From: Parasitella parasitica NRRL 2501
Lineage: Eukaryota > Fungi > Mucoromycota
Reading direction: 5' to 3'
Assembly (NCBI GenBank): GCA_025201805.1
Contig: MU619289.1
Span: 99,357 to 163,356, forward strand
DNA: 64,000 nucleotides
Part shown: piece by piece, positions 1-1,207 of the stretch
Numbering within the stretch: the stretch's first letter is position 1
Layout of the letters: each line of letters begins with the position of its first letter
The notes under the pieces: generated by a model
Databases searched by the model: none
The model's input: the letters and a program-made list of their open reading frames with translations, nothing else
Told to the model about the DNA's origin: nothing
Position numbers and translations under genes: made by a program

Positions 1-1
1 A

Positions 2-498
2 GGTGACAAAAGTAAGATGCCTCTGGTGGTCTTTGGTGACGGGTTAAAAAACAAAGATCATATAAAGTTCAGAGGTTTAAGACACGGTGTTTCGAACAAA
101 ATATACAAGCAACTACAAGCAAGAGAAAGAATTGGTGAACTATTGCTTGTAGATATTAATGAGTTCAAAACATCGAAGGTTATTAAGGAAAAAACACACA
201 TAATTCACATATTGCACTTTCAGCTAAAACCGATTATTCATAGATCTGCAACAACTGTCTCAAAGAAGATCTGGAGAATTTCAAGATAAGCCATGACAAC
301 GAAGAAACCAAAATCCATCAGGTATTGAAGTGTAAAACTTGCAATATTTACTGGAATCGCGATGCCATGGCCTCGAAGAACATGCTCACCATTGCCACAT
401 CAATTTGGTGTGGAAATGGCCGCCCCCAGGTTTTCAAAAGACATACCGCCACCTCCAATGTGGTTGTTGCTGCTCACTCCGGTGAGTCAGCAACTTAA
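2..498 (+). CDS. Fanzor (eukaryotic TnpB/IS200-IS605-like RNA-guided endonuclease), C-terminal part; 5' end lies outside the window
   Basis: Exon 2..178 reads ...PLVVFGDG...LLLVDINEFKTSK. A 65-nt GT..AG intron (179-243) joins it in frame to exon 244..498: ICNNC...VLKCKTCNIYWNRDAMASKNM...GRPQVFKR...SAT*. This gives the TnpB/Fanzor pattern E-x2-TS-x2-CxxC...CxxC-x3-NRD-x2-A-x2-N (RuvC-II Glu, Zn finger, RuvC-III Asp). Confidence 0.9.
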
Positions 499-509
499 AG
501 ATATTGCAG
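420..509 (+). ncRNA. Putative Fanzor omega-RNA scaffold overlapping the 3' end of the ORF (boundaries approximate)
   Basis: Hairpin GTTGCTG-CTCAC-tccg-GTGAG-t-CAGCAAC (466-494; 12 bp, one bulge) and a smaller GCCAC/GTGGT hairpin (448-464) lie in the low-information last codons. TnpB/Fanzor omega-RNAs typically sit at or overlap the ORF 3' end. Confidence 0.5.
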
Positions 510-554
510 GTAAGAAGCTGTAACAATTCTGATTCTTCTAAAAGATACTAACAT

Positions 555-678
555 TGTCTCCATGTTCGTACTCATGTCCCATTTTCATCTTGTTGTCCCA
601 TTTTCGTATTTGTGCCATTTTTGTATTCGTGACCCAACTCAATTTGAAAATGACCAAAATCTATTTTCATTGGCCCAA
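555..678 (+). repeat. Subterminal array of about 7 degenerate TG(T/A/G)CCCA units, 17-21 bp period
   Basis: Units start at 555, 575, 594, 611, 630, 651 and 671; TGTCCCATTTTC is exact at 575 and 594. Confidence 0.7.
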
Positions 679-1207
679 TCTAGTTTCGTCAACTGTAGTA
701 CGCACATGCAGTTGCAATTGTATTTAATAGAGTCCCTTTCAAATTACTACAATGAAAAGTTTTATAATATATTTTACCTAAAAGTCTATAAAATATTTCT
801 TATGTAGAGAATTCTTCGCAGAAAGAAGAAATAGGAGTTGGTATCTAAACCCTTTCAATAAAGTGAAATCTAATGGCTGTTTCTCTTTTTGCAGCTGTAA
901 ATCTACGAAAACGATGGCACGAAATGTATATCATCGGAAATTTTTATCTTACCTTTTTTCTCACTAGCAAAGATTCACTATATGTTACAATTTGCTGAAG
1001 CTATTATGTAGTGCTTCCAGACACTTCAAATGATTGATGAAGCCCAAAAGCGCATGCTAGTGACTCTTGATTAGCTACTCTTATCGGGTGTTATTTTTGC
1101 CATATACGGTGGAGGAGGATGGATTAAATTTCAATGTGAACATCCAAATTTTCATTCTCTCTATTTCATTTCTAAGGTTTAAAACTCTTGAAAAAGACTA
1201 AAGCAAA

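Follow-up and report, generated by a model that had tools for sequence, protein, structure and literature searches.

Splicing across a terminal inverted repeat in a Parasitella Fanzor1 transposon and its possible role in guide RNA assembly

Fanzor and TnpB nucleases need a guide RNA (omega-RNA) whose scaffold directly touches sequence derived from the flank of the transposon, and how this contact is made in eukaryotic transposons with long terminal inverted repeats (TIRs) has hitherto been unexplained. The question is posed by a 64,000-nucleotide (nt) stretch of Parasitella parasitica NRRL 2501 (GCA_025201805.1, contig MU619289.1, forward-strand positions 99,357 to 163,356), termed the window below and numbered from its first letter. 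Positions 1-697 form the right end of a Tc1-like element with TIRs and flanking TA; it carries a Fanzor1 gene of several exons, which runs towards this end and has the right TIR between itself and the host DNA. RNA contigs revealed an intron, 510-683, that takes out almost the whole right TIR, and it appears reasonably probable that this splice builds an omega-RNA with a copy-specific guide taken from the flank. If so, an intron equal to the TIR would explain the contact between scaffold and flank, and the assembly of guide RNA would be a novel task of the spliceosome.

Contigs of four public runs were aligned to window positions 1-900, and the joint was carried by three of them, X1, X2 and X5. 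In each case (X1, 415 nt at depth 901; X2, 2146 nt; X5, 298 nt) the match ends at 509, continues with TTTCGTCAACTGTA, which is window 684-697, and then enters flanking sequence. From those of X1 and X2 the 65-nt coding intron at 179-243 has been precisely removed as well, an internal control by which they can be recognised as RNA. A 20-letter gapped pattern spanning the joint 509^684 had no match in the genome DNA. In X1 the depth is zero over 511-570, and what assembled was the ligated product, as deep as the upstream exon. Because X1 also has a contig identical to the unique flank of the window copy, X1 comes from this strain or a very close one; the flanks in the X2 and X5 contigs are not in the window genome, and the same splice therefore occurs in other strains, in transcripts of elements inserted elsewhere. 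The RNA of at least three samples thus shows the splice 509^684. Another contig of X1, which is 1208 nt long, has a depth of 70 and agrees fully with the window copy, starts at 581 in the right TIR, runs unbroken through the element end to 836 and splices out 837-894 (donor GTTGGT) towards a + strand host gene (ATG 1208); it is therefore an RNA leaving the TIR, or reading through it, that is joined to the host gene transcript.

A joint found in RNA and missing from DNA, with ends GTAAGA..CTAG, identifies 510-683 (+ strand) as a 174-nt spliceosomal intron in the 3' untranslated region (UTR). Its donor (GTAAGA, 510-515) lies 12 nt after the stop codon, and its acceptor (CTAG, 680-683) is the first AG after TACTAAC (546-552), closing an AG-free stretch of 553-681, 14 nt before the element end. 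A first-pass annotation, made from the letters alone, had placed here a hairpin (466-494) followed by 15 nt (495-509, TTAAAGATATTGCAG), the same donor and TACTAAC, a run of about 130 nt after 552 without an AG (the first at 682-683, the next at 697-698) and a further donor-like GTGAGT (482-487) buried in the hairpin, and all of these were found where it had put them. Its description of the donor as an orphan was mistaken, since the donor is matched by an acceptor that lies 14 nt inside the element end and the joint is present in RNA contigs. One of its two models, in which complete splicing cuts out the TIR block so that the flank comes to lie next to the scaffold, agrees with the contigs for the joint 509^684; the acceptor at 697-698 that it also considered is not the one seen.

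The other model held that the spliceosome stops after the first step and releases an RNA ending at 509, with 495-509 as a fixed 15-nt guide, and this now looks extremely unlikely. The fission-yeast telomerase RNA TER1 acquires its 3' end by such first-step-only spliceosomal cleavage, with a strong branch point and a distant acceptor favouring release at that step; the strong branch-point sequence and the acceptor 131 nt away recall that layout, a non-coding RNA would in both cases be shaped by the spliceosome, and contigs are blind to RNA ends, so that a minor first-step-only fraction would be invisible. In contrast to TER1, the window transcript undergoes both steps and its exons are ligated, the ligated form being assembled at upstream-exon depth. 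The 15-mer, which the annotation expected to vary among copies, is identical in all of them, and the search that it proposed for targets gave no exact genome match outside the element copies. The core of the 15-mer, UUA.A...U..CAG, persists across families in which the last exon is only 40-57% identical, and this is the behaviour of scaffold rather than of guide.

The annotation had also proposed to test whether the intron signals are conserved among copies. TACTAAC, the acceptor YTAG and the lack of any AG between them were found in 22 of the 22 scorable copies, although the length of the AG-free stretch varies from 99 to 150 nt; the donor GTAAGA is kept in 20, the exceptions being one GTTAGA and one GTAAAA. 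Such conservation within the family says little, because the copies are only about 5% diverged. The AG-free stretch 553-681 had P = 0.013 under mononucleotide shuffling, 130-nt windows without AG make up 0.6% within the 64-kb window, and in length it ranks third among the AG-free gaps of the + strand there; it is unusual and coincides with the T/C-rich TIR, and is not decisive alone. TACTAAC at 546-552 is the putative branch point to judge from its sequence, with AAUGAC near 644-649, about 35 nt before the acceptor, as an alternative candidate. In the minimum free energy (MFE) fold of 430-717, GAAGCUG (514-520) can pair with UAGUUUC (681-687) over 7 bp, which in this model would bring both splice sites together. 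A search of Rfam with 1-1200 gave two weak sub-threshold matches only, and no ribozyme.

The limits of the element itself were set by its relatives. About 40 copies of window 1-697 are found in the 32.8-Mb assembly at identities of 84-98%, and 24 aligned right ends are alike through ...CAACTGTA (position 697) and unrelated past it. The right TIR (about 555-695, about 141 bp) consists of repeated GTCCCATTTTCRTMTTG units, has the terminus ..CAACTG and is followed by the TA at 696-697. The segment 555-697 recurs inverted, 3.7-5.4 kb upstream of each copy, and the inverted matches are the left ends of about 14 elements; the left TIR of the window copy is L031 1196-1337, with a left end reading TA/CAGTTGACG (the slash marks the element boundary, or below a splice site). 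The shared right ends, the inverted copies and the left end together show the element to be TA-flanked and Tc1-like. Over about 24 right and 14 left ends the pattern TA/CAGTTGACG.. and ..CGTCAACTG/TA was found, that is, the TA duplication and the TIRs starting CAGT of the Tc1/mariner type. If the proposed role of the intron is true, this TIR is under two constraints, transposase binding and AG avoidance.

Two observations on the TIRs may be added. Between its TIRs the window copy (L031 1191-6554) has about 5.4 kb, compared with about 3.7-3.8 kb in most copies, and it probably carries an extra insertion there. At the left termini of family A (L082-L095), CAACAG/TA takes the place of CAACTG/TA in 6 of 14, and an AG-bearing unit variant, CCTAGTAGTGG, occurs in 5 of 14 left TIRs, with extra AGs 89-111 nt from the end; an extra AG was found in none of the 22 scored right ends, and the CAACAG terminus in none of the right ends listed. 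As one or two events probably account for these differences, they offer a hint only.

The flanks of the element differ between its two ends. Read outward, the left ends have an A directly after the TA in 13 of 13 cases (AT in nine), whereas the matching base is A in five of 23 right ends (Fisher P ~4e-6). In gene orientation the left flank therefore has (A)T directly before the TA, and the right flanks vary. This asymmetry fits a requirement for a target-adjacent motif (TAM), as far as the sequences can tell, since a transposase alone should give symmetric flanks. In gene orientation an empty site would read (A)T-TA followed by the right flank, a TAM-like motif and then the sequence that comes after CUGUA in the spliced RNA. 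The first 20 nt of flanking host DNA (698-717, + strand) are the putative guide, for which a length was assumed in line with the 14-21 nt of published Fanzor1 guides; this sequence differs in every copy, and X2 and X5 carry other flanks after the same 14 nt. For one relative in another assembly (L096) the flank is only 75% identical to the window genome and too diverged for an exact empty site to be read.

Other candidates for a guide were tried and rejected. As a fixed guide, the 15-mer 495-509 has exact matches only in element copies, and its few one-mismatch sites look like chance; the 16-mer CAATTCTGATTCTTCT, which follows the look-alike of stem-loop SL2 described below, occurs only in element copies and at three chance one-mismatch sites. 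A 16-nt direct repeat (L031 1567-1582 and window 516-531) would have about 10 nt in the guide, lacks a TAM-like context and appears to be due to chance.

The following course of events is proposed. The Fanzor transcript runs through the right TIR into host DNA, and the spliceosome removes 510-683, as the contigs show; this splice would be the step that builds the omega-RNA, in which the TIR, needed for transposition, is deleted from the RNA. Two hairpins (P1 and SL1) and a linker would be joined to the 14 nt with which the element ends, SL2 would form across the exon junction, and the flank would follow directly, as a copy-specific guide like those of other TnpB/Fanzor systems. The spliced transcript would thus be the precursor of the working omega-RNA, which the protein, by analogy with TnpB, would bind and trim. 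The nuclease may then recognise the empty site, with left (A)T plus TA and then the right flank, and cut it, restoring or spreading the element; this targeting, too, is argued from analogy.

Folds were computed on the spliced and the unspliced sequence, the spliced RNA being assembled from the window sequence. It is predicted to fold as P1 (448-464, a 5-bp hairpin of GCCAC with GUGGU inside the coding sequence), SL1 (466-494, 12 bp with loop UCCG and one bulged U, overlapping the last ten codons), a 10-nt linker with the stop codon (495-504), SL2 across the junction, and then the flank. In the predicted SL2 the 5' arm UGCAG at the end of exon 1 (505-509) pairs with 693-697 and 684-685 pairs with 691-692, giving UGCAGUU with AACUGUA around the loop UCGUC; its 3' arm is thus 691-697 of the element-internal part of exon 2 (684-697), which ends in the TA target-site duplication (696-697). 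From 448 to 697 the spliced scaffold has 76 nt, with an MFE of -29.1 kcal/mol and z = -4.4, and counted from 466 it has 58 nt. These sizes match the known ones of SpuFz1 (75 nt; Saito et al. 2023, PMC10432273) and PpFz1 (about 49 nt; Xu et al. 2024, PMC11423790).

The hairpins differ in how they are conserved. P1 is nearly invariant in 8 sequences of six assemblies, and of the 14 pairs predicted for the consensus structure, 7 are maintained by two-sided changes, all within SL1 (9 pairs). With the z-score, P1 invariance and SL1 covariation indicate a conserved structured RNA overlapping the 3' end of the nuclease open reading frame (ORF), as is typical of omega-RNAs; placement of this scaffold directly before a variable flank was found in the spliced transcript only (X1, X2, X5). 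At locus L103 (2322-2405) the ORF stops about 30 nt before P1 and the whole scaffold is non-coding, in contrast to the window family, where P1 and SL1 are translated as protein. As P1 lies after the stop codon at L103, its conservation cannot be that of a protein sequence and must lie at the level of RNA or DNA. Before the donor, the 5' arm of SL2 takes only forms able to pair, namely UGCAG, UACAG, UAUAG or UAUGG against CUGUA, and UACGA against UUGUA in L051; as background, this 5'-arm pattern precedes 0.75% of the GTRWG sites in the window. These pairings and the folding model suggest that SL2 forms.

The unspliced RNA presents another possibility. There, CUGUAA at 518-523, inside the intron, can pair with 504-509 to give a look-alike of SL2 with the donor in its loop. 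The working RNA could accordingly be the unspliced one, made of SL1, the look-alike (504-523) and a guide downstream of it, with splicing acting to switch it off or to finish the mRNA. That such competition can occur is shown by IStrons (Zedaveinyte et al., PMC10690162), in which a transposon end is likewise both intron and part of a TnpB-family guide RNA region, the same nucleotides serving splicing and guide formation, and the PpFz1 ribonucleoprotein (RNP) made in yeast, which follows this unspliced plan, works in vitro. The look-alike, moreover, is as stable as the spliced SL2. An antagonism of this kind is nevertheless decidedly improbable here: its guide would be the fixed internal CAATTCTGATTCTTCT with the few sites given above, L051 and families B and E have not kept the look-alike arm, and the left-flank asymmetry points to a target derived from the flank. 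IStrons also differ in that a bacterial self-splicing group I intron (IS605/IS607 TnpB) removes the whole element from host mRNA and competes with the omega-RNA, whereas the intron described here has spliceosomal ends, takes out the TIR alone and, as proposed, would create the junction between scaffold and guide.

The plan recurs in diverged Fanzor families, the last exon having 76 relatives in the window genome. In families A and D the acceptor is the first AG past a consensus branch-point sequence, at a distance of 111-131 nt. Family D has a single 162-nt intron, 74% identical to that of the window (UAUGG/GTAAGT, ACTAAT at +44, an AG-free stretch of 111 nt, CCTAG and a 14-nt terminus). Family E starts with UACAG/GTATGT and ACTAAC at +37, and its first AG is that of CAG/GTAAGC, a zero-length exon; a second branch-point sequence and CCCAG follow, the latter 10 nt before ..CTGTA, an end fixed by two copies. 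It therefore consists of two head-to-tail introns meeting at CAG/GTAAGC, and family B has about four such units. In all three families (D, E and B) the last acceptor is always 10-14 nt before ..CTGTA. Past the stop codons of L056 (family B) and L061 and L062 (family E), repeated AG/GTAAG sites were observed, each with its own CTAAY upstream. Sequence of this kind predicts that in B and E the TIR units are crossed by chains of short introns with zero-length exons, that is, by recursive splicing. Distant branch points with AG exclusion zones and recursive splicing through zero-length exons are known from animal genes, and the AG/GTAAG sites could be ratchet points for a similar stepping across the TIR.

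Homologues in other fungal assemblies were found by a profile-free search, and five of these assemblies keep the plan (loci L096, L105 (GCA_000401635.1), L097, L098 and L100); we take them to be Mucorales, relatives of Mucor and Rhizopus. L096 and L105 belong to the window family itself, with the same branch-point sequence, AG-free TIR and acceptor, the 5' arm of L096 being UAUAG. L097 (..CUACAG/GUAAAA) and L100 (..CUGCAG/GUAAAC) each have an internal AAAAAG/GUARG and an end 13 nt before ..ACUGUA; L098 has a donor and internal site as in these two and a decayed terminus. A third type of Fanzor end was observed in family C (L067, L070, L073, L076-L078), where a 76-nt intron (ACAG/GTGAGT..AATTAG) is followed by an 8-bp hairpin, GCATCTCC..GGAGATGC, and TCTA, past which the copies diverge; in L070 the donor has been lost by deletion.

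Several points weigh against the proposal that splicing builds the omega-RNA. The contigs show a long spliced transcript rather than a processed omega-RNA, and the RNA label of the runs is a guess, though one supported by the removal of the coding intron. The look-alike in the unspliced RNA is equally stable (-5.4 kcal/mol compared with -4.9 kcal/mol for the spliced SL2). Three of five SL2 pairs come free, CAG being the splice-site consensus and CTG the Tc1-type terminus; the sole two-sided change in SL2 is in L051, a decayed copy without the acceptor, and L103 and L104 misfit the 5'-arm rule. Splicing in families B-E and in the other assemblies was predicted from sequence only, and the families share ancestry, so that their agreement is not fully independent. 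Finally, the solved PpFz1 RNP holds an RNA of the unspliced type and cuts DNA in vitro (PMC11423790), and splicing may consequently be dispensable for RNP assembly.

Some of these points would suit another view, in which 510-683 is simply a 3'-UTR intron like any other, plays no role in making the guide RNA and belongs to the Fanzor mRNA alone, and the omega-RNA comes from unspliced or separately started transcripts with a scaffold running through the TIR to 697. The long spliced transcript is all that the contigs show, the unbroken X1 contig over 581-836 proves that RNA with TIR and flank exists, and published Fanzor guide RNAs overlap the TIR or right inverted repeat. An accidental intron, however, would not be expected to persist in families with a 40-57% identical last exon and in several assemblies, nor to end always 10-14 nt before the terminus, whether through one long intron or through chains of short ones. 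The unspliced RNA has almost no predicted structure over 525-690, and a scaffold through the TIR would measure about 230-250 nt, compared with 49-75 nt in SpuFz1 and PpFz1. An ordinary UTR intron is accordingly regarded as unlikely, though it deserves serious consideration.

The intron may also remove the TIR for a reason other than a guide, for instance to avoid double-stranded RNA with transcripts of the left TIR and consequent RNA interference. In nematodes, read-through transcripts of the Tc1 TIRs trigger silencing, and the part removed here is almost exactly the TIR. Such a purpose would leave unexplained the short and conserved spacing of acceptor and terminus, the ability of the 5' arm to pair, the conserved hairpins immediately upstream and the TAM-like left flank, and is improbable as the sole explanation; it is compatible with assembly of the omega-RNA by splicing.

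Among published systems SpuFz1 is the closest parallel. It, too, is a TA-flanked Fanzor1 whose guide is the variable 14-15 nt past the conserved end, and its TAM, CATA (PMC10432273), consists of two left bases plus TA, comparable to the (A)TTA suggested here; the scaffolds are of similar length (75 nt and, when spliced, 58-76 nt) and the protein C-termini align. The difference is that the scaffold of SpuFz1 is unbroken DNA that includes a short inverted repeat, whereas here a 141-bp TIR intervenes and is spliced out. In PpFz1 the scaffold of about 49 nt consists of SL1 and a 4-bp SL2, followed by the guide, and the TAM is ATN (PMC11423790). Its likeness to the present system lies in the Mucorales host, the hairpin, a linker ending in UGCAG followed by GUAAG, a very short SL2 before the guide and an ATN that is compatible with AT plus TA; it differs in that the published RNA is unbroken and the protein is distant from the window family. 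A 25-nt pattern of the PpFz1 scaffold had no match in the window genome at <=3 mismatches.

In the orthologue table of Saito et al. (PMC10432273), the Spizellomyces and Naegleria entries have a common scaffold and a wholly different last 14-21 nt. The two Parasitella omega-RNAs of the same table have a hairpin, a 12-13-nt A/U-rich linker and UGCAG/GUAAGC, and their 'guides' are identical at 29 of 33 positions (88%), one of them running into ACTAAT and a T-run. These 'guides' are element sequence and, to judge by their letters, resemble the start of an unspliced intron, which we offer as a lead. Both omega-RNAs were defined by expression in Saccharomyces cerevisiae (PMC10432273), which may not use such donors. 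A wider reading, held tentatively and at somewhat less than an even chance, is that the native guide RNAs of Mucorales Fanzor1 in general, including PpFz1, are assembled by the spliceosome, with the TIR or unit chain as intron and the ligated flank as guide, the published Parasitella 'guides' being unspliced intron. If that is true, it would be a eukaryote-specific way for a TnpB-type nuclease to live in TIR transposons. Should the splice described here build the omega-RNA, guide RNAs defined in budding yeast or predicted from one unbroken conserved stretch may be mistaken where the host is rich in introns, as both Parasitella entries appear to be, and better or smaller reagents for editing may be had from native spliced scaffolds. 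Jiang et al. described Fanzor guide RNA as overlapping the TIR, and in the full-text literature on Fanzor and splicing, a coverage outside which many subscription papers lie, no spliceosomal step in guide RNA formation was described.

The protein encoded here is recognisable as a Fanzor1. The gene starts upstream of the window, which opens inside the penultimate coding exon (1-178, + strand); 2-178 translates to ..LLLVDINEFKTSK, the region of the RuvC-II glutamate (..VDINEFKTSK). The X1 and X2 contigs cover this exon and join 176/178 to 242/244, across the coding intron (179-243, + strand, GT..AG), whose removal restores the frame. The last coding exon (244-497, + strand) is translated over 244-494 into a tail with zinc ribbon and RuvC-III (CNNC..CKTC..WNRD) and ends with the stop codon TAA (495-497), so that the C-terminal features of Fanzor1/TnpB, namely the RuvC-II glutamate, zinc ribbon (TNB) and RuvC-III aspartate, are all present. 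In a PDB search the tail aligned with the C-terminus of SpuFz1, the Spizellomyces Fanzor1 (8GKH, E 1.5e-4); searches with the last exon and with a full-length family-E protein matched SpuFz1 only, the PpFz1 chains not being among the matches. With Pfam PF07282 (TNB) the exon alone scored 17.4 bits, under the cut-off of 26.3, and two homologues scored over it (P0001, 35.8 bits; P0068, 31.5 bits).

The splice signals of this gene and its neighbourhood are uneven. Neighbouring introns supported by RNA use weak GTT donors (GTTATT at 179-184 and GTTGGT at 837-842), in contrast to the terminal intron with its near-consensus GTAAGA and perfect TACTAAC.

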